From the IMG/VR virus record IMGVR_UViG_3300045996_002337, positions 186,001 through 250,000 of that record: a stretch of DNA of 64,000 nucleotides; one strand, given 5' to 3'. Both the position numbers and the translations under genes were made by a program. Below, one piece after another: positions 96 to 22,149 of this stretch. The notes beneath the pieces were generated by a model. It was not told the DNA's origin, did not search any database, and saw nothing but the letters and a program-made list of their open reading frames with translations. Position 1 is the stretch's first letter. Each line of letters starts with the position of its first letter.

Positions 96-782
96 TCACT
101 TTGGAAGGCGTCGATTTTCAGGTAGTACGTCACGGAAATAAATTTCAGTGCTGATGTTCAAAGTTTCACCTTTGATCGAATCTAACTCCTGCGGGGTTGG
201 AACACGGTTCAAGGAAACGGTAATGTACCCCGAGAACTGTCCGTAGTACGGTGGCAGACTTGTTCTACAGACATACGGAAACCTGTTTCCTAGCCCAGGA
301 AACAACGATGCATTACCACCCTCGTTATACGCCGAGCAGGCAAACTCGCCATTGATGACCCCGACAATGCTCTCGTTGTTCTTCTCGTCAGACGTAAAGA
401 GAGGAATGCCACCGTAGCGTCCATTGAACAGCGTCTCTAGCTGGCGCTGCACTGATGCATCATCAGAGTACCATTGAATCGGCAAGCGCCGGTTGTTTCG
501 AATGTCCGCGTTCAGAACCGTGATTGCAATCACCGCATCATCGACATCAACCAAATGTTTGATTCGCGCCTTAGATGTATCTGACATGGTGAATGTCGTT
601 ACTTGAGGCGTGTCACCTTCTGGCCCATTGACAATGTAATTGACAATCACCGTGCGGTTTTCAAAGATGGTGTAGCCGATCAGTGCCACTAGAGCGGCAA
701 AGGTCCAAATCGCCACGTTCTTCAACGAGATGACGCGAATTACCTTTGCCGCAAGTGAGAACAGCCGGTCTTGAATGGCCAT
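96..782 (-). CDS. T4/T5 holin-T-like membrane protein with GAF-like periplasmic domain (paralog 1)
   Basis: One N-terminal TM segment, then about 170 aa with INGEFAC...VCRTSLPPYYGQFSGYITVSL, alignable by eye to T4 T (HLNGRHY...SCPYFNLDNIYAGTITM). TAAATA motif at 813-818. Confidence 0.6.
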   Translation of the reverse strand: MAIQDRLFSLAAKVIRVISLKNVAIWTFAALVALIGYTIFENRTVIVNYIVNGPEGDTPQVTTFTMSDTSKARIKHLVDVDDAVIAITVLNADIRNNRRLPIQWYSDDASVQRQLETLFNGRYGGIPLFTSDEKNNESIVGVINGEFACSAYNEGGNASLFPGLGNRFPYVCRTSLPPYYGQFSGYITVSLNRVPTPQELDSIKGETLNISTEIYFRDVLPENRRLPK

Positions 783-812
783 TGCGTTTTCCCTAGATTT
801 TTTCTGTCAACC

Positions 813-818
813 TATTTA
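813..818 (-). promoter_or_regulatory. T4-late-like promoter motif TAAATA (representative; about 20 intergenic copies)
   Basis: Also at 2443, 5124, 5620, 6937, 7994, 8453, 9744, 15045, 15075(+), 20038(+), 26679, 37923, 39539(+), 44250, 45831, 51472, 53594, 54928, 59292, oriented with the downstream gene. Confidence 0.6.
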
Positions 819-854
819 GGACAATGACCTCCAACCGTGACACTTACATTGGTG

Positions 855-1643
855 TCATTGGGGCTTTTTTGTGACGTCGTTTAGATAAATTTCTACCGCC
901 AAACGTGAGACTTCTAGTCGAATCGTGTCCAATTCTTGCTTTGTTAGCTGCTGACTCATCCCCACCGAAACGAAGCCGACAAACTGCCCCACGAATGGAG
1001 GGATCGCTAAGCGACAAATCGTGGGCAGTTTGCCGGCCAAGTCAGGTGCAAAACGAAAATAGATGGTGTCCTTGTAGTTGTCACACTTGAATTCATTTCC
1101 CAGGATAGCAACCATTTGAGCCGTGTTTTTTGCGTCATAATCAAACACCGCACGAGGCAAAGAAAGGGCAGATGTTATCTCTGGCGTGATAGCGACTGAG
1201 GCGTCATCGATGTAGTAGTAACGTACGACCCTGCGATTTTTCTTAAGGTCAACCTCAGAGACGCTTACGAAGGAAACGTTTGTTGATTTTGCTAAATTTT
1301 GGAGTGCTGTTTTGCTCGCCTCAGATAATTCCCAGGATGTGACGACTGGCTCGGCGGCGATGGGTGGTTGCACGAGCTTCTCGACGATGGTGAGCCGATT
1401 CTCATATAGCGAGAATAAAATCAACCCAATAATGGTGAGAAGACCGATGAGCGCAACCCGCTTGAACGTAAGCGTATCAATCAGGTCCTCAATGAAGGTT
1501 AAAACCTTTTCCTTGTCTACTTTTGGCGCGGCTGGGGCAGGAGTGGCCTCTGGTTCTGGCGAAGGTTTTGGGGCGGGAAGTTGATCTCCTTCCATTTCGG
1601 GTGCCCGAACTTCTTGATCGCTGAGAGATTTTTTGCTAGGCAT
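855..1643 (-). CDS. holin-T-like membrane protein (paralog 2); true start possibly Met at ~1595
   Basis: TM segment, LGNEFKC...ICRLAIPPFVGQFVGFVSVGM. Clear paralog of 96..782. 5' end overlaps the TAXI gene. Confidence 0.6.
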   Translation of the reverse strand: MPSKKSLSDQEVRAPEMEGDQLPAPKPSPEPEATPAPAAPKVDKEKVLTFIEDLIDTLTFKRVALIGLLTIIGLILFSLYENRLTIVEKLVQPPIAAEPVVTSWELSEASKTALQNLAKSTNVSFVSVSEVDLKKNRRVVRYYYIDDASVAITPEITSALSLPRAVFDYDAKNTAQMVAILGNEFKCDNYKDTIYFRFAPDLAGKLPTICRLAIPPFVGQFVGFVSVGMSQQLTKQELDTIRLEVSRLAVEIYLNDVTKKPQ

Positions 1644-2410
1644 GAATTGAACTCCTTGATAGCATTATCAGGTACATCGGCAGCTGCGATGAGAATAGAT
1701 TGGGTTGCCTTTGTTTCTACGGGATAATCCTGCCAAAGATACGTAAGAGCGGGGATGCGTGCTGGTTGATATACTTTTTCAAATTCTGTCTCCGTTATGG
1801 GAATCATTAGGATGCGTTCGGCCATGCTTTGCCCTAGTTCTTGAAATAGCCGTACAGGGGAACCGCCGACAATTAACATCGCGTCAACTTCACCCGTTAG
1901 AACCAGAAGAATGCTTTCTTCTGGAAGGCGGTCAACTTGAAGCCACTTGATGTTTAGCGCATTTCTGATGGTGTTGGCGGTAAACCACATTCCAGACCCA
2001 GGCAGCCCGCTTGCGACGCGCTTGCCATTGAGGTCCTTTAACGTCTTGATGCCGGATTTTTTATTGGCGATGATGGTAATTTCTTCACTGTAGAACGGCA
2101 TGACCATTTTGTAAACGGTCTTCGCCTTTGGTTCTGATCCGAGGATTGCATCGAGCGCGTCCTTTTGAACGAGCGCCAACCGATGGCCATTTTTAATTAC
2201 GGGAGGAGCAATCAGTGCGTTAATGTTAGCCAGCGAGCCTTGCGTTGGCTCTACGTTGATCTGAAACTGTGGACAGGCCTTTTGAATGTCTTCTGCAATG
2301 AGCGCATACGTGCCCTTTTGAAACCCGGTGTAGACGGTGTACAGCGGTTTACCTTGCCCGAACGTGAATGCGGGCAAGAGCAGCGTGACAACAAGCAAAA
2401 GACGTCTCAT
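1517..2410 (-). CDS. TAXI-family TRAP transporter periplasmic solute-binding protein
   Basis: Signal peptide; TGFQKGTY, TQGSLANI, LKDLNGKRVASGLPGSG, GEVDAMLIVGG, GHPKWKEI motifs. Confidence 0.8.
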   Translation of the reverse strand: MRRLLLVVTLLLPAFTFGQGKPLYTVYTGFQKGTYALIAEDIQKACPQFQINVEPTQGSLANINALIAPPVIKNGHRLALVQKDALDAILGSEPKAKTVYKMVMPFYSEEITIIANKKSGIKTLKDLNGKRVASGLPGSGMWFTANTIRNALNIKWLQVDRLPEESILLVLTGEVDAMLIVGGSPVRLFQELGQSMAERILMIPITETEFEKVYQPARIPALTYLWQDYPVETKATQSILIAAADVPDNAIKEFNSCLAKNLSAIKKFGHPKWKEINFPPQNLRQNQRPLLPQPRQK

Positions 2411-2454
2411 ATGTTTATTCCTCCATGACCCTAGGTCAGACTTATTTATGGAGC

Positions 2455-2812: not shown

Positions 2813-3934
2813 TCACCTTCTTACGACGGCGCTAATGGCATAGTGCACCTTTTCAGCTGCAGCATCCCATGTAGAGCGCTTCACGATTTCATTTGACAGC
2901 GCTAGTCGGTGCGCCTGCTCAACCTCAGACTCCTTCAGCAGGTGCTCAATGTGCTTGATGAATTCTTCATGGCTGTAGCCAATTTCAACAACACTGCCAT
3001 AAAGTTCAACAACGTCATGCACCGCGGTTGACACGATGGGCTTCTCTGCGGCCATGTACTCAAGGGTCTTCGTTGGTGAAATGAACTTCGTGCTGTCATT
3101 AAGGGCGAAAGGCAGCATGCAGACGTCCCACCCTTGAACGATCATTGGTAGAATGGCGTAATCTTTTTGGCCCAGCCAATGAATGTTTTCACGTTGCGGC
3201 AGAATTGCAGGATCGATCTTAACAACCGGACCAACCATTACAACATGCCAACGTGGATTGGCATCGGCAATTTTTGCCACAAGCTCAACATCAAGTCGTT
3301 CGTCGATAACGCCGAAGAAGCCAATCCGTGGGTGTGGAATTTTTGTTTCTTCTTCAAACAGTGTCTCAGCTTCAATTTCACGAGCTCGAGATGGTGAATA
3401 GTGCTTAGAATCAACGCATGATGGAAGACAAATGGTGTCTGGACGAATTTTTGATTTTGCTGCCCACAATGATGGACCGCCGGCGATGACCACATCCGCG
3501 GTTTGAAGTAGATCGGCCTCACGTTCCTTTAGCTCCTTGGGCGCGTTGTGGAACATCGTCAGTTCGTCCATTACGTCGAACACGACAAAATCTGGCGAGA
3601 ATAGATTATGAAGCGGGTAGGCCTGTGGGGTGTAGAACCAAATACCATAGGAGTCATCACCGCAGCCATTTGAAAAGAACCATTCGCGCAGCAATGGGCC
3701 AAATGAAATCATGTGCTGATTGGTGAAACCCCACCCTTCCTCATTTGTGTGTGGCACTACAACGGTGATGTTAGCTGCCACCTTTGCAGTGTAGAGGTGA
3801 GGTGCGCCAGTCGTAAACATCGGCTCCTCAACGAAGACGATGTTATAGTGCTCAGCCAGCCTCGATAGAAGGTGCTGTGGACGTTGAAAAACGAAGTTCC
3901 AGCGTAGGTGGGAGAATACTAGGAGGGTTTTCAT
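2813..3934 (-). CDS. GT-B glycosyltransferase (family 4-like)
   Basis: FSHLRWNFVFQRPQHLLSRLA N-terminus, IGFFGVIDERLD, PTKTLEYMAAEKPIVST. Confidence 0.9.
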   Translation of the reverse strand: MKTLLVFSHLRWNFVFQRPQHLLSRLAEHYNIVFVEEPMFTTGAPHLYTAKVAANITVVVPHTNEEGWGFTNQHMISFGPLLREWFFSNGCGDDSYGIWFYTPQAYPLHNLFSPDFVVFDVMDELTMFHNAPKELKEREADLLQTADVVIAGGPSLWAAKSKIRPDTICLPSCVDSKHYSPSRAREIEAETLFEEETKIPHPRIGFFGVIDERLDVELVAKIADANPRWHVVMVGPVVKIDPAILPQRENIHWLGQKDYAILPMIVQGWDVCMLPFALNDSTKFISPTKTLEYMAAEKPIVSTAVHDVVELYGSVVEIGYSHEEFIKHIEHLLKESEVEQAHRLALSNEIVKRSTWDAAAEKVHYAISAVVRR

Positions 3935-5096
3935 TACGAGTCTTTCTTTTGAAATGATGTTGCCAACGACGTAGGGTTTTTAGAGACCCAAAATGATGGG
4001 TGCGGGTGTCGTTAATAATCCCGCACCGAATAATAAAACTTGGATCATGCCAACATGGCCTATCCAAGATGGGATAAATGCAAAGACCCTGCAAATTTAC
4101 ACCGTGCTTAAGGGCAACGTTTACTTCGCGCAAAACATATTCTAGCCACTGAGCGCGGTCGTCACCAAAGTGCCCCGTTTCAGATACAATGATTGGCCGT
4201 TGATATCTATCTGATACTTCTGACAGCAACGCCGAGAATGGGAGGCGGCGGGCGTCTGGTGGGTTCCAACTCAAGTGCTTGTCGGTCTGCACCTCCATTT
4301 GTCCGTTGTAATAGTAGTTGACGCCGATGAGATCTAGGGCATCTGGGTGACCGCCTAGATGGGGTTCCATAGAGCCCTTCAACAGTTCCCAAGTCTGCCA
4401 TTGGTAGCCACGTACCTCCTGTGCTAGTTCAGCTAGATCTGGGCGATCCTCTGGCGCGACAACATGTAGAAGCGGCTCGACGTGCAGGAATCGAGCGTCA
4501 GGACTAACGTCCCTCACCGCGTCCATGGCCTTCAACACTGCACGTACGAGCCGACATTTTGTTCTGTAGCCTTCATGCGCGGCTTCACTTTTGGCTCCCT
4601 CAGGGCGCCCTCGATATGGCCACATGAAATCTGTTTGTGAAGTAGCCCAGGCCAAGAAGCTTATCTCATTGATGAGATTGAAGACGGGTGGCCGTGTGTG
4701 ATATGGCTTTAGTGCTTTGGCGGCTTCAACCGCGTACTTCACAAAATGATCAATGAAAGAATCATCGAGCAGGCTCACGCCCGCAGGAGTGCCATAGTGC
4801 ATGAACGTCCAAATAATTTGGATGCCTTGCTCTTTTGCTTCCTTGGCGAATGAAATGGCGCGGCTGAAATCAATTGGCGCGTCAATGCTCGGCTGCGAAA
4901 TGCGCCAACCGATGCTTTCACGAATTGTGTAGATACCGAGTTTGTTGAGCTTTTGATAATCTTGGCGATAGTGGTCCAGGTGGCCGCTACCTTGAACCAT
5001 GTCAAGCTTATTTTCTTGTGCATTGACGTGATCTGCACCTTCAAAGCCACCCATCCAGAATGACTTGTACAGACCCGCTGTGGGTGTTTCGTTCAT
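3852..5096 (-). CDS. glycoside hydrolase, GH1-like (beta-glucosidase-like)
   Basis: SFWMGGFEGADH, INEIS (acid/base Glu), IGVNYY, IVSETG (nucleophile Glu). Confidence 0.8.
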   Translation of the reverse strand: MNETPTAGLYKSFWMGGFEGADHVNAQENKLDMVQGSGHLDHYRQDYQKLNKLGIYTIRESIGWRISQPSIDAPIDFSRAISFAKEAKEQGIQIIWTFMHYGTPAGVSLLDDSFIDHFVKYAVEAAKALKPYHTRPPVFNLINEISFLAWATSQTDFMWPYRGRPEGAKSEAAHEGYRTKCRLVRAVLKAMDAVRDVSPDARFLHVEPLLHVVAPEDRPDLAELAQEVRGYQWQTWELLKGSMEPHLGGHPDALDLIGVNYYYNGQMEVQTDKHLSWNPPDARRLPFSALLSEVSDRYQRPIIVSETGHFGDDRAQWLEYVLREVNVALKHGVNLQGLCIYPILDRPCWHDPSFIIRCGIINDTRTHHFGSLKTLRRWQHHFKRKTRNENPPSILPPTLELRFSTSTAPSIEAG

Positions 5097-7156: not shown

Positions 7157-7969
7157 TCAACGTAATGCGTTAACCTGCTGGAGCAGGCTTTCGTGTTTCG
7201 ACCCTGGTGGTAGCACTCCAAGCAGGTGCATCAAGGTCTGTGCATTATGAGGGGCGTGAGCCCTTCCATCATTATTGAAGAAAATGTAGACTTCTTTGCC
7301 GGCTTCTGCAAGTCGACGAATCATGGCTGCATCGTTCTTCAAGTCTTGGTCTGTGTAGTTACCCCAGTATTTACCGGAGGTTTTTGGCCCGTGTCTGCGA
7401 ATGTAGACAAAATCCGCGGTGTCAGTTGGATCTGTTTCAGTGAAACGGTCTGATGCCACAAGCACTGCGTTGTGACGCTTGAGCTCGTCATACGTCTCCC
7501 GAACAAGCCAAGAGGTGTTGCGCACTTCCAGCGCAAGCTTCAAGCCGCTGGAGTTCAGAAATTCAGCAAGCGGGCCAACTCGATCAAGGAGCTTGCTGCT
7601 CGAGCGCTCTGCGAGCTGCACTAGAACTGGACCTCGTTTGTTGACATCAATCTTGTGAATGCCTTCGACGAAGTACTTCATCAGCTCAATGCCGTCTCTT
7701 GTGTCCCCGTCTGAATGCAGCTTGAGCTGACGCGAATGTGTGAATGACTTTGGCGACTTCAGGACAAGCTTGCTATTTGCATGCATCTTAGCACCCCAAC
7801 GCTCAACTGAATCGGGCTTTGGGATGTTGTAGAAGGACGCGTTAATTTCCAACGTGTTGAAGTGGTCAGCGTAGTACTGGAGCAGATCACCTGTTTTCGG
7901 TGGATAAAATGCTCCATTCTGCCAATGGTGGTACGAGTACCCACTACAACCAATATAAACGTTCTTCAT
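7157..7969 (-). CDS. DUF72 domain protein
   Basis: IGCSGYSYHHW, EINASFY, K-x-PK-x-x-TH, ALEVR-x-x-SW, YIRRHG, YIFFNND...AP-x-NA. Confidence 0.9.
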   Translation of the reverse strand: MKNVYIGCSGYSYHHWQNGAFYPPKTGDLLQYYADHFNTLEINASFYNIPKPDSVERWGAKMHANSKLVLKSPKSFTHSRQLKLHSDGDTRDGIELMKYFVEGIHKIDVNKRGPVLVQLAERSSSKLLDRVGPLAEFLNSSGLKLALEVRNTSWLVRETYDELKRHNAVLVASDRFTETDPTDTADFVYIRRHGPKTSGKYWGNYTDQDLKNDAAMIRRLAEAGKEVYIFFNNDGRAHAPHNAQTLMHLLGVLPPGSKHESLLQQVNALR

Positions 7970-8001: not shown

Positions 8002-8421
8002 TCACTCTTTATTAGTGAGCGCCTTTTCAACAGCCCTATCTTTTGGAATGACGGCGACACGCGGAAGACGGAGAATGAACGGCCAAATTGCAATTGCAGT
8101 TGCCACGGAGGCAATCGCGGTTGCGGCCTTCACCCAGCCCTGTAGCCAGTAAAGTGGGTACCAGATAACAGCGATATCGACGAGGTGAGTCGTGCCGCAC
8201 AAGAAAATGAAGGCGCAGAAGAGCATGAACACCCAACTTGCAATGATGTCCTTGCGCTTGTCGAGGAGAACAAGCAACGCAACGGGGATGGAATAGTAAG
8301 CAAGGGCGATCAACAGGTCCGAGAGGACCATCAGCAGAACTAGATCGCCGTTCCATTGGAAACAATAGCCATGCGGAAGAAGGCCGTTTCTAGCGACCCA
8401 GTTGACTAGGTTATCACCCAT
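8002..8421 (-). CDS. stand-alone ethylene-receptor-like (ETR1-type) 3-TM sensor domain
   Basis: PHGYC...SDLLIALAYYSIP...FCAFIFLCGTTHL...VKAATAIASVATA; retains the D, Y and C-x3-H residues of ETR1-type domains; no kinase domain. Confidence 0.75.
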   Translation of the reverse strand: MGDNLVNWVARNGLLPHGYCFQWNGDLVLLMVLSDLLIALAYYSIPVALLVLLDKRKDIIASWVFMLFCAFIFLCGTTHLVDIAVIWYPLYWLQGWVKAATAIASVATAIAIWPFILRLPRVAVIPKDRAVEKALTNKE

Positions 8422-9138: not shown

Positions 9139-9213
9139 TGGCGCCCCTGGCAGGAATCGAACCCACATTCACGCTTTAGAAGAGCGGTGTATTTTCCATT
9201 ATACGACAGGGGC
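9139..9213 (-). tRNA. tRNA-Arg(TCT)
   Basis: Cloverleaf, loop CT-TCT-AA, encoded CCA. Confidence 0.9.
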
Positions 9214-9219
9214 AGAGGT

Positions 9220-9738
9220 TTATTTTAACTCGTTTTTCTTCTCTATCTCAACTATTTGTTCAAGAACTGCGGTTGGGTTTGTTTCATCTGAAAGTCCCTG
9301 TGCTTCCGTGCGGTGTTCTTGTCTAACATCTAACCGCTCAGCTATCTTGTCAAGCAGCCGGAGGATAGCTGTGCTCTCGCGTTCAGCCAGCAGGTTAATT
9401 TGCAGGTCGAGTTTGTGTCGCTTGTCTGCTTCTTCAGCTAGACGATTCTGACTCAACAAAAGGAAACCAGAAAGGAGAATGGCCTCGAGCGAGACGAGTG
9501 TCGTGAGCAGGGTAAATGGGAACGGATCAAACTGCCATACAGTCAAATTAAGGGTTGTCCAGCCAATGAAGATGGCTAGATGAACGGCGATGAAGCTGAC
9601 GGTGCCAGCCCATTGTGCCACAGTATGTGCCACTTTTTCCGGGATGGATTGTTTCTTGAGCTGATCTTGCTCGTGCACAAAGATCGCCTCGATGTTCTCG
9701 TGGGTGATCTGCACTGGGTCATTAGGTGCTTCATTCAT
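9220..9738 (-). CDS. DUF1003 family membrane protein
   Basis: FDPFPFTLLTTLVSLEAILLSGFLLLSQNR...DLQINLLAE-x-E motif. Confidence 0.9.
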   Translation of the reverse strand: MNEAPNDPVQITHENIEAIFVHEQDQLKKQSIPEKVAHTVAQWAGTVSFIAVHLAIFIGWTTLNLTVWQFDPFPFTLLTTLVSLEAILLSGFLLLSQNRLAEEADKRHKLDLQINLLAERESTAILRLLDKIAERLDVRQEHRTEAQGLSDETNPTAVLEQIVEIEKKNELK

Positions 9739-12548: not shown

Positions 12549-12577
12549 GCAAAGAACACGTTTCAAAAATACTTAGG

Positions 12578-12651: not shown

Positions 12652-12668
12652 GCCTAAGTATTCTTACT

Positions 12669-12744: not shown

Positions 12745-12750
12745 ATTGTT

Positions 12751-12826
12751 TGGTAGGGGCACAGGGATTCGAACCCTGACTTGACGGATTAAAAGTCCGC
12801 TGTGATAACCATTTCACCATACCCCC
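12751..12826 (-). tRNA. tRNA-Lys(TTT)
   Basis: CT-TTT-AA, CCA. Confidence 0.85.
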
Positions 12827-12841
12827 GTTAGGAGGTACGTT

Positions 12842-12887
12842 TGGCAGACGCGCTAGGCGTCGAAGACATTTGTCGCATTGCGCGTCC
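12842..12887 (-). ncRNA. 46-nt mini-tRNA-like element
   Basis: GGACGCG...CGCGTCT-G-CCA acceptor stem enclosing a small GACA-AA-TGTC hairpin. Confidence 0.4.
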
Positions 12888-12900
12888 TTTCTTTGTTGAT

Positions 12901-12972
12901 TGGCATCCCGTCAGAGAGTCGAACTCTGTCCATGCGTTTTGGAGACGACAGGCCCTAGCCGTAGGCCGAGAT
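12901..12972 (-). tRNA. degenerate tRNA-Trp(CCA)
   Basis: CT-CCA-AA loop, intact T arm and CCA, irregular D arm and anticodon stem. Confidence 0.6.
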
Positions 12973-12984
12973 ATTAACTTGATT

Positions 12985-13078
12985 TGGCTCCCTCGGACGG
13001 ACTCGAACCGCCATATTACGCCTTACGGCCTTTACGTCTGATTAACAGTCAGGTCTCTTACCATTAGAGTACAAGGGA
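12985..13078 (-). tRNA. tRNA-Asn(GTT) with 24-nt variable region
   Basis: CT-GTT-AA; variable arm GCC-GTAA-GGC; G73; CCA. Confidence 0.8.
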
Positions 13079-13086
13079 ATAGAACT

Positions 13087-13161
13087 TGGTGCGCCTCCCC
13101 AGAATCGAACTGGGCTCTCTCCGGTTAAGAGCCGGGACTTCGCCAGCAAAGTTTGAGACGC
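13087..13161 (-). tRNA. tRNA-Lys(CTT)
   Basis: CT-CTT-AA, CCA. Confidence 0.8.
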
Positions 13162-13169
13162 GAAGAAAG

Positions 13170-13248
13170 TCTGAACAAAAGCCTTGCGGCGTGCGGTCTC
13201 AAGGAGGTTCAATAAAAGTGATAACCTTGAAGTTGCGAGCGGTTCAGA
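13170..13248 (-). ncRNA. Y-RNA-like small RNA (no tRNA module)
   Basis: TCTGAA-C-CG...GGTTATC-ACTTTTA...GCC-GCAA-GGC-TTTTG-TTCAGA; homolog of 10100..10181. Confidence 0.6.
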
Positions 13249-13253
13249 TTGTT

Positions 13254-13328
13254 TGGCGCTCCGTAGGGGTTACGATCCCCTCTAGCCAGGTTGAAAGCCT
13301 GGTGACCTCACCAGATGTCTAACGGAGC
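13254..13328 (-). tRNA. tRNA-Glu(TTC)
   Basis: CT-TTC-AA, CCA. Confidence 0.85.
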
Positions 13329-13334
13329 ATTGTT

Positions 13335-13410
13335 TGGTGGGCCCTCACGGAATCGAACCGTGTCCTTCGGAGCTTCAATCCGACGTACGCACCAGCTATA
13401 CCAAAGACCC
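13335..13410 (-). tRNA. tRNA-Phe(GAA)
   Basis: TT-GAA-GC, CCA. Confidence 0.85.
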
Positions 13411-13418
13411 ATAAATTT

Positions 13419-13494
13419 TGGCTGGCCACCGCGGTCTCGAACCGCGAACCCCTGGTTTTGGAGACCAGTGCTCTGCCAATTGAGCTAGTGACCA
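13419..13494 (-). tRNA. tRNA-Trp(CCA)
   Basis: CT-CCA-AA, G73, CCA. Confidence 0.9.
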
Positions 13495-13498
13495 ATAT

Positions 13499-13735
13499 CT
13501 ATTTCTTCAACGCTCTAGAAGTCGAGGTCGCCTTGAGAGCTTAGTCCAACCGCCGTACGAACGTTGAAGAAATAGTCCATTGCCACCGAGGTGGTACGAG
13601 AATCCTCTTCCGAGAATCCTCCAATGGACTAAAACATATCCATCCCTTTTCGCGCTCGGCAGTCTGAAGAGTACTCGACTGATTCATGGCGGTCCATCTT
13701 GTTTATATCCCGCGAGATGTAGCAACGCGGTAAAA
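13499..13735 (-). ncRNA. structured non-coding leader (several long hairpins)
   Basis: 13-bp IR tatttcttcaacg/cgttgaagaaata, 10-bp IR tagtccattg/caatggacta, direct repeat cgagaatcct x2. Confidence 0.4.
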
Positions 13736-13744
13736 ATTGTCTCT

Positions 13745-13790
13745 AAAAAACAACCCAGGGTCCAATCTTTCGAGAGGACCCTGGTTCTTG
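13745..13790 (-). terminator. intrinsic terminator (attenuator) upstream of tRNA array 1
   Basis: AACCAGGGTCC-loop-GGACCCTGGGTTG followed by TTTTTT on the minus strand. Confidence 0.85.
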
Positions 13791-13808
13791 TGAGTGTGGA
13801 AGAAGCGC

Positions 13809-13946
13809 TTAGCTTACTTTCCTCCCTAGAACCAGGGACGTATCGGTGATAATCTCATCATTTCGCTTATTCTCGAAACGCACAGAGACGTCTTGGCTTT
13901 GTTGCCAATGCATTTCTGTTTGTTTAAAGAAGGTTACGAAGTTCAC
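13809..13946 (-). CDS. putative 45-aa leader peptide (attenuator)
   Basis: SD AGGA then GTG; MNFVTFFKQTEMHWQQSQDVSVRFENKRNDEIITDTSLVLGRKVS*; its 3' part GTCCCTGGTTCT is complementary to the terminator 5' arm. Confidence 0.55.
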   Translation of the reverse strand: MNFVTFFKQTEMHWQQSQDVSVRFENKRNDEIITDTSLVLGRKVS

Positions 13947-14217: not shown

Positions 14218-15039
14218 TCAGGTCGGTTTTGGCAACTTGATCTTCTTCAGCCCAAGAATGAAATCGTTGGCGATGAGGTCATTGTCGTCTACGATCGGGT
14301 CAAGAATCACTATTTGACCGTCGCGCAGTGCAAGGTTGCGGTCTGCCACATCATAGCGGTCGTATTTACCCATCACCTTAGCCAGTTTCACAGAGATTGC
14401 CATCAATTCAAGCACATCGGGATTCAGCTTCTCAATGTACTTTGACAAATCTGCACCTTCAATGTCTGAGTCCTCAGCATGGTAGTGAAGCATTTCGATA
14501 AGCGCGGCGCGCGGGTTGTTACCCATGCCTCCCCATTCAAACACCGTTTCGATCGACGTGTAGTTCTCAATGTCGTTGAACTCCATGCCAATCTCTTCAA
14601 GCACCTTCCGGTCCTTGAAGAGCCACAGTACGCTGTCGCCTTTGAATGGTTGAAGAAGCTCCATCTTCACGTACTTCAGACCGCGGAGGATTTCGGCATC
14701 AGCTTCAAGATTATCCGGATCTTCTTTCGCGGACTTCAAATTTAGAAGACGCGGGAGATGCTTGATTTTTGATTTGAACTTTGGCAGCCATCGCGATGGG
14801 TTCTCCATGCAGAACTCAACGAACTTTTCGTAGGCACTGTCACGATGCCAGAACTTGTACACCTTTTCGCCATCAGTTAGGGCGAGGGCATTCGCACCCC
14901 TTCCCAATGGGCGCAGCTTGGTAACCCCAGCATCGATAGCTTGCTGAAGGCGCTGTAAGACAGCAGCAACATGGCTCTCTTCGTCATTTTGCGAAGGCGC
15001 CGTGATGGATTTAATGCCGGTGAGTTCAAGTAGATTCAT
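14218..15039 (-). CDS. Ser/Thr protein kinase-like protein (T7 gp0.7-like fold)
   Basis: LGRGANA G-loop, VYKF lysine, YDVADRN catalytic loop, ILDP. ORF track start 15093; likely start 15039. Confidence 0.7.
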   Translation of the reverse strand: MNLLELTGIKSITAPSQNDEESHVAAVLQRLQQAIDAGVTKLRPLGRGANALALTDGEKVYKFWHRDSAYEKFVEFCMENPSRWLPKFKSKIKHLPRLLNLKSAKEDPDNLEADAEILRGLKYVKMELLQPFKGDSVLWLFKDRKVLEEIGMEFNDIENYTSIETVFEWGGMGNNPRAALIEMLHYHAEDSDIEGADLSKYIEKLNPDVLELMAISVKLAKVMGKYDRYDVADRNLALRDGQIVILDPIVDDNDLIANDFILGLKKIKLPKPT

Positions 15040-15099
15040 GCAGCTATTTACGTGGGGTGGGGTTGCAAACTCACTAAATAGACAAGTTGCCAAGGAGCA

Positions 15100-15804
15100 G
15101 TGACGATGAGAGACTTTCTTGAACAGAACAACACGCTAGTTGTCGGTTTAGCCGTTGGCGGAACCGTGCTTGCGATCATCCTCGGCATTCTTCTGTATGG
15201 AGCTAGGGAACTTCAAGTCGAAACGCTGAAGAGAATTGATCAACCGGCTGTTGGCGCTGTGGAGCTACCAGGGCCTAAGAATCAAATCAGCGACCGTTCG
15301 AAGAAACAGGTGGATACATTGCTAGATGAAACACCCCACATCGTCGGCGGCTGGGTCACGAAGCTCCAGTATGGAAAGACGGAAAACCCCATCATTCACT
15401 TCTGGACAGAGAGTGACACCGTCAAGGACCTGATCATTGAGTTCGGAGAAATTCAGGAGAGTGGACGCGGATCGAGCTCCGCCGAGCTAAACGCGGCGAG
15501 CGAGCAGTCGCTAAGGAATTCTGAAGAAGCCAAAAGCGGTCTCATTAAGTGTGGGCCGTTGAGCGCCACAAACCTTCTTCAAATTGCACCGTCAATCGTC
15601 AACGTTGCAAAGGGAGTCTGCCGAGCAACTATCCCACCATTTGATGAAAACGTTAACCTAGGCGTGGTGGTGCTGATTGACGTTGATCCAAATGACAACA
15701 ATGCGGACATCCAAGCGATTCGCCGCACGCTGCTTCAACTTCAGATTGACGTGTTCAACCGCGATTACCAAGGTCGTGAGACCTGGGCGCGTGCGATAGA
15801 GTGA
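15100..15804 (+). CDS. holin-T-like membrane protein (paralog 3, divergent)
   Basis: TM segment, KSGLIKC...VCRATIPPFDENVNLGVVVLI...LQIDVF; TAAATA at 15075-15080. Confidence 0.55.
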   Translation: MTMRDFLEQNNTLVVGLAVGGTVLAIILGILLYGARELQVETLKRIDQPAVGAVELPGPKNQISDRSKKQVDTLLDETPHIVGGWVTKLQYGKTENPIIHFWTESDTVKDLIIEFGEIQESGRGSSSAELNAASEQSLRNSEEAKSGLIKCGPLSATNLLQIAPSIVNVAKGVCRATIPPFDENVNLGVVVLIDVDPNDNNADIQAIRRTLLQLQIDVFNRDYQGRETWARAIE

Positions 15805-16188: not shown

Positions 16189-16586
16189 TTCAAAATCTCC
16201 ATTTGTTTCTCACGCTCACGTAGACCATCACAAGCTTTGATGGCCCAGTCGACATCCCAGTTAGTAATGGCTTTAAGGGTGGCGCCTTGAACCAACAGCT
16301 TTTTCACACACGGGTCTTTTGCGGCTTTCGCAATACTTTCGTTGGTTGCGGCTCGGGTCTCATGGAAAATGACGAAGTAGAGAAGCGCTGTAATAAGCGG
16401 TGGAAGCCAGATTCCCATCCATGCAATCATGAATTTGCGGATGGCTTCGACAAGAGAGCCAAGACCCCATACGAGTCGATGCGCTCGTCGGGCCCACAGG
16501 CGACGGGTTGCTGTACTTTTCACCGTGAGAATCCTTCTTCTAGAGCCATGACCAGCTTTGGAATGTCGGCGGCATAGAAGCCGCAC
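16185..16586 (-). CDS. hypothetical membrane protein (paralog of 15805..16188)
   Basis: Same ATRRLWARRA and Cys motifs. Confidence 0.6.
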   Translation of the reverse strand: MRLLCRRHSKAGHGSRRRILTVKSTATRRLWARRAHRLVWGLGSLVEAIRKFMIAWMGIWLPPLITALLYFVIFHETRAATNESIAKAAKDPCVKKLLVQGATLKAITNWDVDWAIKACDGLREREKQMEILK

Positions 16587-17317
16587 GAGTTCAACGTATT
16601 GATTTCTACAACCTTCATTCCATCTGGCGTGTCACAGACGTCGATCACAAATGCGGCGTGAGGCTGCCATTCAGCAATTCTATCACGCGCGTAGTCGAAG
16701 AAACACTGGTCAACCTCCGAAGAGTAGATGACCTGGTCGCCGCGCTTGTAGAGCGAAGCCGTGATGATGTCACCGTGTACGACCCAGAAACGGTATTCGG
16801 AGTAGATCACCTTCGGTTTGGTGACTTGAACGAGGGTGTTCTTCGTCAAGGAGTTGCCGTAGTCCTCTTCAAGGACGCAGACCTTTCGCTTCCAGGTGTA
16901 GAATTCTTCCTTCTCGAAAACCTTACCGGCGAATACCTTGCTGTCCTCAATTGGTCGAATGAAGGCGAGATGCTCCTCACCACGTTCAAAGAACGGAAAC
17001 ACCGCGTCCTCGAAACGGCTGACCTTCGAGTCGAAGTTAAGCATATGCTCGCCCCACTTCTCGCGCTGCATTTCAAAGTTGCACGGCTCGAGGTCGAACA
17101 CGCCAGGTGTCCAAATCTTGCGCTTCGCATAGTGCCGGAGGGAGTACGACCCCATGCAGATCACGTTCTTGTGGTCAAGCTCGGGCTCTGGCATGAGGTC
17201 ACCAACGAATGGAACGACCTTGTGAATGGAGTAGGGCAAGCCAAGCCGCTCGAGGGTGTCGAGTAGGGTCTGGTAGGCGGCCTCATTGAAGAGGTTGTTC
17301 TGTAGAATCCAATGCAT
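16520..17317 (-). CDS. ATP-grasp protein, R2K/DUF4343-like
   Basis: FIRP...SKVFAG, SEYRFWVVHG, AFVIDV...VVEINTLNSCGFY. Confidence 0.8.
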   Translation of the reverse strand: MHWILQNNLFNEAAYQTLLDTLERLGLPYSIHKVVPFVGDLMPEPELDHKNVICMGSYSLRHYAKRKIWTPGVFDLEPCNFEMQREKWGEHMLNFDSKVSRFEDAVFPFFERGEEHLAFIRPIEDSKVFAGKVFEKEEFYTWKRKVCVLEEDYGNSLTKNTLVQVTKPKVIYSEYRFWVVHGDIITASLYKRGDQVIYSSEVDQCFFDYARDRIAEWQPHAAFVIDVCDTPDGMKVVEINTLNSCGFYAADIPKLVMALEEGFSR

Positions 17318-17318
17318 G

Positions 17319-17666
17319 TCAGTGCAGCGGCGGGCTGTCGTCGAGGTAGATGTTGTCGTCATCTTCAGCTGTCACTTCTATCAGGTGCAAGATGATCGTC
17401 TGAAGAACTTCAGCATCCAGTTCGTGGATGATTGGGGCCTCTTCTCCGTCACCACCTATTTCGTAGCGCATGAGGTCGCGTGACCCACCCTCAATCGGAT
17501 CCGCGATCACGATGTGCGAAAAGTTCATCAGCTGATAGGAGCTGTCAGGACCAACGGTGAACATGGGCGCGAGGTCCCCAAATTCACCGTCATCGTCGAC
17601 GGTAACTTGTGCGAAGCACTTTTCGCCTTCAACGTCAGGCACACGAAAAATGGCAAGCTTTGACAT
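17319..17666 (-). CDS. hypothetical acidic protein
   Basis: ORF; start MSKLAIF at 17666. Confidence 0.55.
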   Translation of the reverse strand: MSKLAIFRVPDVEGEKCFAQVTVDDDGEFGDLAPMFTVGPDSSYQLMNFSHIVIADPIEGGSRDLMRYEIGGDGEEAPIIHELDAEVLQTIILHLIEVTAEDDDNIYLDDSPPLH

Positions 17667-17950
17667 CACATCACCTCGAAAGCAAAGTTGAGCAGTTCTT
17701 GGGCACCCCATAGATCGAAGGGCACAGGGTCAGGGGTTTCACCGCAGCAGAACTCTTCGAGCTCGGCAGGTGAGAGCTTCGAGAGGGCAATGTCCACCGC
17801 CTTGATGTCAGCTTCAGCATAACGCTCCTCGACGAGATGCATCACGTGGTTAACAACCGATTCCTCGGTCACCCCACGGTAAATGACGCCACTGTCGTAG
17901 GCAATCTCAATGACGGCCTTGATGAGCGATGGGTACTTGTGTGGGATCAT
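17666..17950 (-). CDS. hypothetical protein
   Basis: 94-aa ORF coupled to both neighbours. Confidence 0.6.
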   Translation of the reverse strand: MIPHKYPSLIKAVIEIAYDSGVIYRGVTEESVVNHVMHLVEERYAEADIKAVDIALSKLSPAELEEFCCGETPDPVPFDLWGAQELLNFAFEVM

Positions 17951-19014
17951 TTTGCAAGCTCGTTTGGAATGAAGGCGCGGCCGGCCCGCCAGTGTTTTTG
18001 CGTTTGAACATGATTGGCGCGAACGAACTTTGCCACGCTCTTGCGAAAATCGCCGTAGCTAAACTCACCAGCAATCCGAACCACGTAACCTTCGTCCTTT
18101 TCAAAGTCTAGACTCTTCTCAATGTCACGAACAGTTTTCTCATCCCACATGCCATCATAAAGAACTGGGACAGGTGTTAGGCCGAGCAGCTCACACCAGA
18201 CGATGGTGTCATCCCACCTCAAGCAGCGGTTCTTTGCATCCCAAATGCTAAAGCACATGAAGTATGAAGGCAGGGCGGTGTAGTGAATCGAGTGCTCGGC
18301 CCAGAGGTTCTCGCCGCAAACACGCCAGCCTTCAGGAAGATTGAAGCAGACGTTCTCGATCAGGAACTTCTTGACCCAGGCCCGGTCTTCGCCACCACGG
18401 CTGTCAATCGAACGTGCGTGAATGTGACCATCGCTGTACGCGGTGGTGTTCTCACCGTCCATCTTCTTGGTGATGACTACACGGCGACCTTCAAACTGCG
18501 AGCAGTCCTTCAGGGCTTTGTCGTCGTCTTGTTTTCCAGGAGACCAGGGGAGGTGGAACGTCCGCTCGTACTTGACGTACGAGGTAAACAGATCCAACGC
18601 TCCACCCGCGGCCAGAACTTTCTGTACGGACTCGTCAAAGAAGAGCTCGCCCTTGGCGCGGCGACCGTCAGCAAGTACTGGGTTTCCCCATTTGTCGTAC
18701 TGATGGTCAGGGTAGAAGTGCGGAGGAACCACGATCTTCGTGATGCCTGCTGCTTGACGCACGTCCTCGACCGAGTAGAACGTTTTCTCGCAGAGAAGAT
18801 GATGCAGCTCGCACACGGTCGCGCCGTTCTCGAGATAGTAGCCACCATCTGGCCACAGCCGCCGCTCGAGAATGTGATGCGCGTCGAGCTTGCCCTCAGG
18901 GGTTTGCGCTGCAGTGATTCCGCAGAAAACGCACTTGTGACCATCTCGAAGGAACACACCTTCGCGGAAGTTGTCTCGAGTAAGTAGTTTGGGCTCTGCC
19001 ATGTTATTCTCCAT
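17947..19014 (-). CDS. HNH-domain / RNA ligase fusion protein
   Basis: N-terminal CVFC...DAHHI...NGATVC-x-x-HH; C-terminal ligase motifs KMDGEN, CGEN, EGYVVR, K-F-V-R. Confidence 0.85.
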   Translation of the reverse strand: MENNMAEPKLLTRDNFREGVFLRDGHKCVFCGITAAQTPEGKLDAHHILERRLWPDGGYYLENGATVCELHHLLCEKTFYSVEDVRQAAGITKIVVPPHFYPDHQYDKWGNPVLADGRRAKGELFFDESVQKVLAAGGALDLFTSYVKYERTFHLPWSPGKQDDDKALKDCSQFEGRRVVITKKMDGENTTAYSDGHIHARSIDSRGGEDRAWVKKFLIENVCFNLPEGWRVCGENLWAEHSIHYTALPSYFMCFSIWDAKNRCLRWDDTIVWCELLGLTPVPVLYDGMWDEKTVRDIEKSLDFEKDEGYVVRIAGEFSYGDFRKSVAKFVRANHVQTQKHWRAGRAFIPNELAK

Positions 19015-19966: not shown

Positions 19967-20072
19967 GAATGCATTATAACATCCAACCTGATTTATGTAG
20001 AACTGTTACACAAAATGTTCAACCTTGGCCGTATCCATAAATAGAGGTTTGAGGATGATGAGGAGAACGAAC

Positions 20073-20831
20073 ATGGCAAAACTTTTCGCCGTGCTTTTGC
20101 TCACGCTGCTGACTGGTTGTTTTAATCACGTTGATGAGTCAAAGATTCCACTGACTGAGGATGAGCTGGCATACATTGCTGGGCACCCTACGGTCACCTT
20201 CGCGGCCGAGGATAATCGACCTCCATACATTTTTGTGGAGGGCGATCAAGTGAAGGGGCTTTCGACCGAGTACATTGAGCTGATCGCAAAGAAGACGGGT
20301 CTTAAATTCCAGCCTGTTAAAACGGGCAGCTACATCGAAAGCATGGACGCATTAGAAATGGAAAAGGTAGATGTGATGACCTCCATCAGGCCAACTCCGG
20401 AAAATACTCGGTTTATGGGCTTCACCCCGCCAATTGCATATCAGGGCGGTGTTTACGTTTTTCGGGTAAACACTCTTCCTCGTTCTCCGCTTACAACTGG
20501 ACTTCACAAAGGGTGTCCAGCCCGAGGCTACCTCGTGTCTAGATTTCCGGACATGCAGCTCGTTGACACAGTTGATGATGAAGAAGCGATTTCCCTTCTT
20601 CATAAAGGGCTGCTAGACGGAGTGGTCACTGATGCTGGAACAGCACGATACCTAACAAACAAAAGTGACGTTCAAGTGCGGTGGGCTTCCATTAACTTCG
20701 ACTTCCCGTTTTCATTTGCATACAACAGCAATGCTGTCACGCTTGGCAGCATTCTAACAAAAGCTATCTCCTCAATCACCCCCGAGGATAAGCACACCAT
20801 CAATTCACGTTGGTTAGTAGGAACAAAATAA
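20073..20831 (+). CDS. family-3 (amino-acid/PAAT-type) periplasmic substrate-binding lipoprotein
   Basis: LLTGC lipobox; LTEDELAYI...AEDNRPPYIF...G-x-x-x-EYIELIAKKTGLKF; stop overlaps the next ATG (TAATG); TAAATA at 20038-20043. Confidence 0.85.
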   Translation: MAKLFAVLLLTLLTGCFNHVDESKIPLTEDELAYIAGHPTVTFAAEDNRPPYIFVEGDQVKGLSTEYIELIAKKTGLKFQPVKTGSYIESMDALEMEKVDVMTSIRPTPENTRFMGFTPPIAYQGGVYVFRVNTLPRSPLTTGLHKGCPARGYLVSRFPDMQLVDTVDDEEAISLLHKGLLDGVVTDAGTARYLTNKSDVQVRWASINFDFPFSFAYNSNAVTLGSILTKAISSITPEDKHTINSRWLVGTK

Positions 20832-21493
20832 TGGTCATGAAGGTAACTCCCACCACTACCGCCCGTGAAGAGCGCACGTGGAAAACTCTAGCAATTGCCG
20901 CGTGTGGCGTTGCAGCCCTAACTGCGGGGCTCGTCGTGTACAAGGGGTGGGACGTGAAGGAACGAGTTGACAATCTGCCACCTGTTATCTCAAACACAAA
21001 ATTTCAAATTTCTGATCGTTCAAAAGACGCGCTGGTTGAATACATGCGTGAAGAGCCGCTCATTGTCGGCGTTGCAGCTGTTGAAGTTGATCTTGCAAAG
21101 AACACGCGCCGCACTGTTTTCTTTCAGGCAAGCTTGTCAGCTCTTCAGCGGGTGTGGGATGATTATCTAACACGCAGAGCCCCACCACCTGCAGTCTTTT
21201 CAGCTTCTTCACCTGCCCAGCAAAATGAGCGCATGGCGCACGTGATCAATGGCAACTTTGACTGTCGCCCATTTAGAGACACTGTCGGCTTCAAATACTA
21301 TCCAGAGGCAGAGAACTTTGCACCCTGGATCTGCTCAATTTCCGTTCCGCCTGGATTTACCGGCGGGGATTTTAGCGGCTTCATTACGTTTTACTTAACG
21401 CGAGAACCAGAAGACGCTGAAATGAAGAAGATGACAAAGAACGCAATTGAGCTGTCAGCTTTGATTCACCGTCGCGATATCCAGAAGAAATAA
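20831..21493 (+). CDS. holin-T-like membrane protein (paralog 4)
   Basis: TM segment, VINGNFDC...ICSISVPPGFTGGDFSGFITFYL. Confidence 0.6.
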   Translation: MVMKVTPTTTAREERTWKTLAIAACGVAALTAGLVVYKGWDVKERVDNLPPVISNTKFQISDRSKDALVEYMREEPLIVGVAAVEVDLAKNTRRTVFFQASLSALQRVWDDYLTRRAPPPAVFSASSPAQQNERMAHVINGNFDCRPFRDTVGFKYYPEAENFAPWICSISVPPGFTGGDFSGFITFYLTREPEDAEMKKMTKNAIELSALIHRRDIQKK

Positions 21494-21507
21494 GGATTGT
21501 TCACATA

Positions 21508-22149
21508 ATGCAAAACAGACCAGACCGCCTACAGTTTTGGAAACTGATCACCATCGTCTTTACGCTCATTAGCATTGTGGCCTTGGGCATCTTTGGATTT
21601 CAGCAACGTCAACCGATCGCTCTTCAAATTGTCGGGAAGCGAGTCAATTTAGATAGTGGACGAATGCCGGCACCAAGTGACGCGTCTATCAGCGAGCTGC
21701 AGGATTTTACCGAAGCCGGGGGAAACATCATGGGCATCAACGTCATTCGAGTGGATTTTAGAATGAACACCCGCAATACGACGTTCCGTCATTTTAAGGA
21801 ACCTGCAGTAACTGCTGCTTGGGAAAAATTTCTTGAGACGCAGCAGGTGGCACCGCTGTTTGGCTCTAACGAACAGACAAACCAACGTCTGATTAACCTG
21901 ATCAATGGTCAATTTCTGTGCGTTAATACCACGAACACCGTGGCGGCGCAATTGATTCCTGAAGTTGCATCACACAGTCAAACTACGTGTATGGCACCGA
22001 TCCCGCCTGGCTACGGCGACTTCGTCGGCTTCATCAATGTGTTCCTTCGCAAGGCACCCTCAGTGCAGGAGATCACTGAGCTTGAAGAATCAACTAGAAA
22101 ATTGGCGATTGACATCTACGAACGAGACGTCGTAAAAACTAAAAAATGA
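21508..22149 (+). CDS. holin-T-like membrane protein (paralog 5)
   Basis: TM segment, LINGQFLC...TCMAPIPPGYGDFVGFINVFL. Confidence 0.6.
   Translation: MQNRPDRLQFWKLITIVFTLISIVALGIFGFQQRQPIALQIVGKRVNLDSGRMPAPSDASISELQDFTEAGGNIMGINVIRVDFRMNTRNTTFRHFKEPAVTAAWEKFLETQQVAPLFGSNEQTNQRLINLINGQFLCVNTTNTVAAQLIPEVASHSQTTCMAPIPPGYGDFVGFINVFLRKAPSVQEITELEESTRKLAIDIYERDVVKTKK

Follow-up and report, generated by a model that had tools for sequence, protein, structure and literature searches.

A phage represented by a 349,660-bp IMG/VR contig carries five old copies of a membrane protein built like the phage T4 lysis-timing protein T. Four of them are located in two conserved three-gene operons, each behind a nutrient-binding-type protein with an export signal, an arrangement for which no previous description was found. 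This arrangement may let the phage sense chemicals outside the cell, although such a function is inferred from sequence and predicted structure alone. The analysed window covers 64,000 nucleotides, at positions 186,004-250,003 of the contig (features in the table below). The original prediction reported five holin-T-like paralogs, four of them in tandem pairs behind solute-binding proteins of two unrelated families (TAXI and family 3) with no permease or ATPase next to either, and this observation was confirmed. Its interpretation, in which the binding proteins act as antiholin-like partners or as inputs to a holin-derived receptor tuning lysis to metabolites, was only partly supported.

All five ORFs were homologous, with pairwise BLASTP E-values from 7e-39 to 1e-3, and each scored against a family profile built without any window sequence, from 1.1e-78 (paralog 1) to 5.9e-30 (paralog 3). 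A profile scan of all window ORFs of at least 150 aa recovered exactly these five. They belong to an uncharacterised, phage-specific family (PHROG 31287; 404 clusters of about 220 aa at 50% identity) without any Pfam match. Based on hydropathy and AlphaFold secondary structure, the paralogs have the layout of T4 holin T, with a short cytoplasmic N-terminus, one membrane helix near the N-terminus, a connecting helix and a globular periplasmic domain of roughly 150 residues. Of the motif proposed in the original prediction, only C...C-x4-PP was invariant, while NG-x-F-x-C and G-x-F-x-G held strictly in paralogs 1, 4 and 5, loosely in paralog 2, and not in paralog 3. The two cysteines were invariant across 148 sequences and lie on predicted strands 148-151 and 170-176, at positions different from C175/C207 of T.

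AlphaFold models of paralogs 1 and 5 (pLDDT 93 and 91, respectively) gave a GAF fold for the periplasmic domain. In Foldseek searches, the T4 holin T periplasmic domain was the top PDB hit for paralog 1 (E 2e-4, TM 0.57-0.63) but ranked 21 for paralog 5, for which GAF domains were the top hits (5dfx, 7e-6). Overall, the T chains 6pxe, 6psk and 6px4 matched at E 2e-4 to 2e-3 and TM 0.52-0.63, and generic GAF domains (5dfx, 3o5y, 3eea and 7ckv; TM 0.55-0.63) scored as well or better, so that the predicted fold is no closer to T than to ordinary GAF domains. No sequence-level homology to T was shown: neither Pfam Phage_holin_T (PF11031) nor any Pfam GAF model matched any paralog at E<=1, and hhalign against T4 T alone gave under 1% probability. 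Against a profile of seven T holins it gave 21% (E 0.001), covering only the N-terminal helix and membrane segment, which aligned co-linearly. Annotated class III/T holins nevertheless appeared among the full-length viral matches, and the closest annotated viral matches are holins. The N-terminal amphipathic helix that T4 T needs to form holes (PMC12162936) was present in the clades of paralog 1, paralog 2 and gp076 of phage S13, but absent or inconsistent in the clades of paralogs 3, 4 and 5.

Coordinates of the features in the window, with their size and associated observations. Labels L004 to L043 designate related phage loci.
Position	Strand	Feature	Size	Observations
2443..2448	-	TAAATA promoter-like motif		33 nt upstream of the TAXI gene start
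1517..2410	-	TAXI-family solute-binding protein, first gene of triad 1	297 aa	Pfam NMT1_3/TAXI, 1.6e-25; solved TAXI proteins, 1e-15; Sec-type signal peptide, kept in orthologues
855..1643	-	Paralog 2	262 aa	Pro-rich cytoplasmic extension; 5' end overlaps the TAXI 3' end by 127 nt; orthologues in L004, L007, L011, L013-L017, L020, L034, L040, L043
813..818	-	TAAATA motif		In the 72-nt spacer before paralog 1
96..782	-	Paralog 1	228 aa	Invariant C149, C172, P177, P178; viral matches include S13 gp076 and class III holins
15075..15080	+	TAAATA motif		Upstream of paralog 3; divergent partner at 15045-15050(-)
15100..15804	+	Paralog 3	234 aa from the GTG	Likely start ATG 15106, behind an AGGAG; most divergent member; short N-terminus; solitary, no binding protein beside it; orthologue in L014 at 13244-13897
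20038..20043	+	TAAATA motif		12 nt upstream of the family-3 binding-protein start
20055..20831	+	Lipoprotein of solute-binding family 3 / Venus-flytrap type, first gene of triad 2	258 aa	Pfam SBP_bac_3, 1.8e-12; lipobox LLTGC, kept in all 22 orthologue clusters
20831..21493	+	Paralog 4	220 aa	Start overlaps the stop of the upstream gene (TAATG); orthologues in L023, L025, L027
21508..22149	+	Paralog 5	213 aa	14 nt after paralog 4; short N-terminus
22149..22176		Hairpin, likely terminator closing triad 2	12 bp	G+C-rich; between the convergent ends of paralog 5 and ORF 22180-23082

Both binding proteins were confirmed by Pfam searches and carry export signals that their orthologues keep. The best solved relatives of the family-3 lipoprotein were the sensor domains of BvgS and EvgS and of EAL/GGDEF proteins, rather than transporter receptors, and its +2 residue was never Asp in 23 orthologues. 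For the TAXI protein, seven phage orthologue clusters were found at 51-69% identity, the nearest non-phage hits being far away at 27-28%. No permease or ATPase was found among the flanking ORFs scanned: the neighbours of the TAXI gene encode a glycosyltransferase, a GH1-like protein and the two single-pass paralogs, without a fused or separate TRAP Q/M permease, while triad 2 contains only the two paralogs besides the binding protein and is flanked by opposite-strand genes without ABC permease or ATPase domains.

Conservation of the adjacency in related phages had been set beforehand as a criterion, and both three-gene arrangements recurred in divergent phage contigs. Triad 2, an isolated plus-strand unit between minus-strand genes, was present in all five relatives examined, at 44-57% binding-protein identity. 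The TAXI gene was directly upstream of a pair in every context examined, i.e. L011, L013-L017, and two orthologue clusters looked up directly (P0245 in L040-L042 and P0243 in L043). For four more orthologue clusters, the longest contig had the same length as that of a paralog 1 orthologue cluster. In L040, the upstream neighbours differed. However, the pair also occurred without TAXI in five related loci (L004, L007/L012, L010, L020 and L034), so the TAXI gene is dispensable for the pair. In addition, all relatives come from one lineage of 310-380-kb phages with a shared NUDIX-HNH neighbourhood, and part of the synteny may simply be inherited, although the operon structure was kept down to 40-44% protein identity while flanking genes changed. 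In the phylogeny, paralogs 4 and 5 were sister clades (support 85/84); the two pairs therefore arose by separate tandem duplications, each being joined to a different binding-protein family.

The T4-like phage S13 possesses genes for endolysin, spanins and rII/rIII, but no canonical T was found anywhere in it: the T profile scored at best E 0.073, against 2.5e-101 for the T4 control, and the usual t slot between the tail-fibre genes and asiA was empty. S13 carries a single family member, gp076, which fits a holin role there and appears to stand in for the missing T. In the window, by contrast, five copies are unlike any known holin arrangement, and neither the flanking ORFs scanned nor any ORF scanned elsewhere in these 64 kb of the 350-kb genome was an endolysin or spanin, so that a canonical lysis cassette may lie elsewhere.

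Taken together, the five genes are best explained, tentatively, as type-II inner-membrane proteins with a periplasmic GAF-fold domain of putative disulfide type, each pair being served by the ligand-binding-type protein encoded in front of it, one a secreted TAXI protein and the other a lipoprotein flytrap domain of the sensor-kinase type. In this view, the binding protein, with or without its small-molecule ligand, would dock on the periplasmic domains of the membrane pair, as the T4 antiholin RI docks on the globular domain of T, and would pass a periplasmic chemical cue to membrane proteins whose oligomeric state controls membrane permeabilisation or lysis timing. In T4, the globular domain is dispensable for hole formation and serves antiholin regulation, while the amphipathic helix is essential (PMC12162936; PMC11413866). 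Paralogs 1 and 2, which keep a T-like amphipathic helix, would be the candidate hole formers, and paralogs 3-5 more likely regulators or sensors. Family membership, topology, the modelled fold, export signals, operon structure and operon conservation were established by the analysis, whereas binding between the parts, any ligand, hole formation and any effect on lysis, including antiholin-like action, are inferred. In a more specific and unlikely reading, which the data still allow, the binding proteins would be ligand-gated, antiholin-like regulators: binding of an environmental or host-derived metabolite in the periplasm would change how they dock on T-fold membrane proteins and so set the time of permeabilisation and lysis. 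This would be chemical control of lysis timing by a virulent jumbo phage, using two independently assembled sensor modules, with extra family members lacking the hole-forming helix acting as modulators.

Periplasmic sensing or docking unrelated to lysis is the closest alternative, although also unlikely. The GAF-fold proteins would then be receptors or tethers for the phage's own binding proteins, serving another envelope function during infection, such as superinfection exclusion, masking or hijacking of host transport or chemosensory partners, or bridging of the envelope between an outer-membrane lipoprotein and inner-membrane proteins. This reading is favoured by the generic ligand- or partner-binding fold, by the absent or inconsistent amphipathic helix in the clades of paralogs 3-5, by the signalling flytrap relatives of the family-3 protein, by the lack of adjacent lysis genes among the ORFs scanned, and by the +2 residue of the lipoprotein, which under the enterobacterial sorting rule suggests outer-membrane sorting. 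On the other hand, the cytoplasmic parts of the paralogs comprise only about 10-60 residues with no recognisable output domain, which makes classical signalling hard to picture, and both the holin annotations among the viral matches and the lack of any other T-type holin in S13 argue for a link to lysis.

Two further alternatives appear still less likely. The pairs may be bona fide holins, or a holin plus a homologous antiholin, with the binding proteins being auxiliary metabolic genes that feed host TRAP or ABC transporters and merely share a transcription unit. The T-like layout and predicted fold and the occurrence of the pair without TAXI agree with this, and phage-borne binding proteins serve as metabolic helpers in other cases, for example cyanophage PstS. 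However, two unrelated binding-protein families each sit directly upstream of an independently arisen pair, every phage TAXI or family-3 orthologue context examined had the pair next to it with overlapping or tight junctions, the phage TAXI clade is remote from its nearest non-phage hits, and the family-3 protein resembles sensor domains. Alternatively, the family may be an expanded set of membrane proteins of unrelated function, such as assembly or envelope-stress factors, with a convergent resemblance to T and an inherited synteny without functional meaning. The absence of detectable sequence homology to T, the commonness of GAF folds and the single phage lineage are compatible with this reading, while the conservation of the operons amid changing flanking genes, the two independent binding-protein associations, and the full-length layout, including the amphipathic helix, speak against it.

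T4 lysis inhibition is the classic case of a phage sensing its surroundings, and holin T has been regarded as unique in layout (PMC12162936). The present analysis adds an unannotated phage family of about 400 clusters with the same layout and predicted fold, a T4-like phage in which a member appears to replace T, and conserved operons that put proteins of ligand-binding type in front of pairs of these proteins. If the binding proteins regulate the membrane proteins, phages could time lysis or another envelope event according to small molecules, and not only according to superinfection, which would also give orphan phage binding proteins a role other than nutrient uptake. Even if the function is not lysis, the operons offer a defined three-protein system that can be tested in laboratory E. 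coli.

Compared with T4 holin T and its antiholin RI, the window proteins share a size of about 220 aa (213-262 aa), the topology, a globular alpha/beta periplasmic domain with conserved cysteines, and a separately encoded exported protein positioned to bind it. They differ in the position of the cysteines, in copy number, in not being located beside the tail-fibre genes and asiA, and in their candidate partner, a 260-300-aa ligand-binding-type protein encoded in the same operon instead of the small RI. GAF-domain small-molecule sensors (cyanobacteriochrome, histidine-kinase and IclR-type ligand domains) have the same fold but are cytoplasmic and fused to output domains, whereas the window domains are periplasmic with conserved cysteines and no output domain. 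Binding-protein-dependent sensors, either with fused flytrap domains (BvgS, EvgS) or with separate binding proteins docking on membrane receptors (LuxP-LuxQ, or the maltose-binding protein on Tar), likewise place an exported binding protein with no transporter beside it next to membrane proteins with periplasmic domains, but the membrane partners here have no kinase, methyl-accepting or other cytoplasmic signalling module. TAXI-TRAP transporters share the secreted TAXI receptor, but the downstream genes here encode single-pass proteins that cannot form a transporter. The features of a two-component spanin were not found either, as the periplasmic domains are predicted globular GAF folds rather than coiled coils, and the lipoprotein is a 258-aa flytrap protein rather than a small outer-membrane subunit. 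In SpoIISA/SpoIISB of Bacillus subtilis, a membrane-damaging protein has a GAF domain bound by a neutralising partner (PMC3057836). The GAF domain of SpoIISA is, however, cytoplasmic, the protein has three membrane helices, and the pair is a bacterial toxin-antitoxin system with no binding protein.

Concerning the TAAATA motif, which the original prediction described as a late-type signal upstream of each locus, its presence at the TAXI gene, paralog 1, paralog 3 and the family-3 gene was confirmed, but the late-promoter label was not supported. The motif was enriched across the whole window (30 sites against 11.4 expected), strand-matched to genes and located in front of many unrelated ones, as a general promoter-like motif.

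The window (positions 186,004-250,003 of IMGVR_UViG_3300045996_002337, a viral contig of 349,660 bp) was about 50% G+C and held 47 tRNA genes, all on the minus strand, in arrays covering most amino acids, one of them being called with the odd Ser anticodon ACT. No near-identical DNA was found among sequenced phages, although related contigs of 310-376 kb exist in metagenomes. Concerning the host, the only GTDB hit was a 36.6-kb contig binned into an Acinetobacter MAG, which is weak evidence.

The observation behind the original prediction held, as the five ORFs exist as it described them. They aligned over their full length, with two cysteines, a PP pair, two serines, one further proline and an aspartate being invariant. 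Pairwise BLASTP E-values ranged from 7e-39 to 1e-3, each ORF matched a family profile built without any window sequence (1.1e-78 to 5.9e-30), and a profile scan of all window ORFs of at least 150 aa retrieved exactly these five. Each possessed one hydrophobic segment near the N-terminus. No Pfam model matched them, including Phage_holin_T and the GAF models, but four of the five matched PHROG 31287 ("unknown function"), which is centred on gp076 of the T4-like Cronobacter phage S13 and its relatives. An exhaustive profile search of 1.8 billion representative proteins found 404 clusters; most of the 150 listed were 205-260 aa long, the shorter ones matching only part of the profile. The broad alignments of the family lacked a conserved peptide stretch with which loci could be searched family-wide.

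The structure of the family was further inspected with AlphaFold2. Based on a 148-sequence alignment, a confident model was obtained for paralog 1 (pLDDT 93), with an N-terminal helix (residues 2-17), a membrane helix (20-41), a short helix and a linker, followed by an alpha/beta domain (68-225). Against the PDB, the best Foldseek hit of this model was the periplasmic domain of T4 holin T in its complex with the antiholin RI (6pxe_F, E 2e-4), other T chains giving TM values of 0.57-0.63 and GAF domains following closely. The model of paralog 5 (pLDDT 91) matched GAF domains first (5dfx, 7e-6), with T4 T at rank 21 (5.9e-4, TM 0.52-0.63). The predicted domain is therefore a GAF fold, of which T is one good match rather than a uniquely close one. 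Against predicted viral structures, the full-length model matched S13 gp076 (8e-13), uncharacterised 214-aa proteins of the jumbo phages RaK2 and GAP32 (about 1e-7), a "class III holin" of Proteus phage Stubb (4.9e-7) and annotated T holins (3e-4). Among the BFVD hits, jumbo phages reported or assumed to lack T had uncharacterised proteins of about 200-214 aa with the same predicted full-length structure (H6X3V2 in RaK2, K4F9M1 in GAP32, and two, A0A1B4XWY6 and A0A1B4XWY0, in Tenacibaculum phage pT24).

At the sequence level, homology to T4 T was not demonstrated. Searches with Pfam, a profile search of the PDB, and hhalign with one T sequence and with seven all failed or were marginal, the profile of seven diverse T holins aligning to the family only over the N-terminal helix and membrane segment (probability 21%, E 0.001). 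In T4 T, the globular domain can be removed and serves regulation by the antiholin (PMC12162936; PMC11413866). The paralog 1 clade, the paralog 2 clade and S13 gp076 possessed, as T does, an amphipathic helix just before the membrane segment, while the paralog 3, 4 and 5 clades had short polar N-termini without a consistent helix. Readings of these loci as spanins, anti-sigma factors or TRAP/ABC transporters were rejected on domain content. ICP1 TeaA/ArrA was also considered as a structural analogue and rejected, TeaA being a three-helix GTA-type holin and so not comparable.

The whole 182-kb genome of phage S13 (NC_028773; L036, L001, L037, L038, L035 and L039 among the loci retrieved here) was examined as a natural test. 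S13 is a T4-like phage with gp55, endolysin, spanins, rIIA/B and an rIII-like gene, but the usual t position between the distal tail-fibre genes and asiA was empty. The T profile found nothing in any ORF of at least 60 aa (best E 0.073), whereas it scored T4's own T at 2.5e-101. The only T-layout protein detected was gp076, a family member located beside the head genes gp23 and gp24. Its neighbours are not lysis genes, the gene annotated "hydrolase" being PTH2-like. This is circumstantial support that the family can supply the holin role, but S13 could use an unrelated holin.

Concerning the binding proteins, the first gene of triad 1 encoded a TAXI-family protein (NMT1_3, 1.6e-25; solved TAXI proteins, 1e-15) with a Sec signal peptide, and the first gene of triad 2 encoded an SBP_bac_3 protein (1.8e-12) with the lipobox LLTGC. 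The best solved relatives of the latter were the periplasmic flytrap sensor domains of BvgS and EvgS and of EAL/GGDEF proteins, not transporter receptors. Orthologues kept both kinds of export signal, including all 22 family-3 clusters. By contrast, the ORF beside paralog 3 had no signal peptide and no family match, so paralog 3 has no visible partner. In L014, a 310-kb relative, at least four family members were found within 8 kb, and one of them, a paralog 3 orthologue, was followed in the same operon by a 292-aa ORF with no family match.

The conservation of both arrangements was then examined in related loci from metagenomic contigs (designated L followed by a number). Triad 2 (family-3 protein, paralog 4, paralog 5) was present in all five related loci examined (L023-L027), with identities of 44-57% for the binding protein, 35-43% for paralog 4 and 39-49% for paralog 5, and was always a tight plus-strand unit flanked by minus-strand genes. 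In the window, the stop of the binding-protein gene overlapped the start of paralog 4 (TAATG), paralog 5 followed after 14 nt, and a 12-bp hairpin closed the unit. Triad 1 (TAXI, paralog 2, paralog 1) recurred in L011, L013, L014, L015/L016 and L017, at 40-63% TAXI identity. Seven phage TAXI orthologue clusters were found at 51-69% identity, followed by a gap to 27-28%. The two clusters whose contigs were looked up directly (P0245 in L040-L042 and P0243 in L043) were immediately followed by a pair, with overlapping junctions, and a further one, P0242, may correspond to L011. In L040, the genes upstream differed from those in the window, where a GH1-like glycosidase and a GT1-type glycosyltransferase, conserved in L004 and L005, lie directly upstream of triad 1. 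Conversely, the paralog 2/paralog 1 pair occurred without TAXI in L004, L007/L012, L010, L020 and L034; TAXI is therefore accessory to the pair. The 3' end of the TAXI gene and the 5' Pro-rich extension of paralog 2 overlapped by 127 nt in different frames, and the same extension exists in relatives lacking TAXI (L004, L007). In the related contigs L004 and L040, a Ro60/TROVE plus vWA protein was encoded just downstream of the conserved NUDIX-HNH genes that follow the paralog pair.

A maximum-likelihood tree resolved paralogs 2, 3, 4 and 5 as old clades, each with orthologues in other contigs, whereas the paralog 1 orthologues grouped loosely and were not resolved as one clade. Paralogs 4 and 5 were sisters (support 85/84), which rejects the duplication of a whole pair as the origin of the two pairs. 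The two pairs are thus independent tandem duplications, each joined to a different binding-protein family, which is harder to explain by inherited synteny alone.

The original prediction had also read the TAAATA motif upstream of these loci as late-type. The motif was enriched about 2.6-fold in the window (30 sites against 11.4 expected, none of 100 shuffles reaching 30), strand-matched to genes, and typically located 12-45 nt before start codons. However, it preceded many unrelated genes, including the GH1-like gene, a DUF72 gene, an ethylene-receptor-like gene and the gene next to the helicase, and the full T4 late form TATAAATA occurred only three times in 64 kb, none at these loci. The late-promoter reading was therefore rejected as specific: TAAATA is a plausible promoter element, probably the phage's own, but says nothing about late timing.

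Taken together, the proposal that the binding proteins act as antiholin-like partners or sensory inputs of holin-T-like proteins found support only in part. The best-supported reading, which remains tentative, is a periplasmic module in which an exported ligand-binding protein would work with a pair of T-layout membrane proteins through their GAF-fold domains, by analogy with RI on T, paralogs 1 and 2 being the possible hole formers and paralogs 3-5 the possible regulators. The main rival, judged unlikely though not far behind, keeps the coupling between the binding proteins and the GAF-fold proteins but drops lysis as the output. Holin pairs accompanied by unrelated metabolic binding proteins, and a family of unrelated function, are weaker alternatives. 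While the family, its predicted fold, the export signals and the conserved gene arrangements were established from the sequences and models, binding between the components, any ligand and any membrane damage are inferred. Within the 64 kb of the genome examined for lysis genes, a 315-aa ORF combining a peptidoglycan-binding domain with a YkuD L,D-transpeptidase domain (1.6e-18) looked like a phage-encoded cell-wall cross-linking enzyme rather than an endolysin.

Full-text literature searches, including those for binding-protein/holin systems in jumbo phages, found no description of operons pairing binding proteins with T-like proteins, nor of this family. Class III-holin-like proteins with periplasmic regulators are already known. 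The RaK2 paper states that T and RI are absent from that phage by sequence, whereas a RaK2 protein appeared among the structural matches.

Other genes in the window included a 139-aa ORF matching Pfam ETR1_N, the membrane-embedded ethylene-binding N-terminal domain of ethylene receptors, at 2e-35, which stands alone with no kinase part, in a phage, as well as a set of RNA and repair-type genes.

Coordinates of the binding-protein genes and of other features in the window and in related contigs
Sequence	Coordinates	Strand	Feature
Window	1517-2410	-	TAXI-family binding protein, triad 1
Window	1517-1643		Overlap of the TAXI gene and paralog 2
Window	2813-5096	-	GH1-like glycosidase (414 aa) and GT1-type glycosyltransferase (373 aa)
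Window	7157-7969, 16520-17362, 17947-19014, 33618-34727, 37906-38841		RNA and repair-type genes: DUF72, R2K ATP-grasp protein, RNA ligase, CCA-adding tRNA nucleotidyltransferase and NinI-like phosphatase
Window	8002-8421	-	ETR1_N ORF
Window	9139-13494, 42632-42706, 55167-63952	-	tRNA genes
Window	14218-15093		ORF beside paralog 3
Window	20055-20831	+	SBP_bac_3 (family-3) binding protein, triad 2
Window	58319-59266	-	Peptidoglycan-binding/YkuD ORF
Window	e.g. 5124, 5620, 6937, 7994, 26679, 39539, 45831, 51472, 59292		TAAATA sites
L004	10352-11968		Ro60/TROVE plus vWA protein
L040	from 8651		Ro60/TROVE plus vWA protein
L014	13244-13897 and 15312-15950		Loci cited for the at least four family members within 8 kb, 13244-13897 being the paralog 3 orthologue
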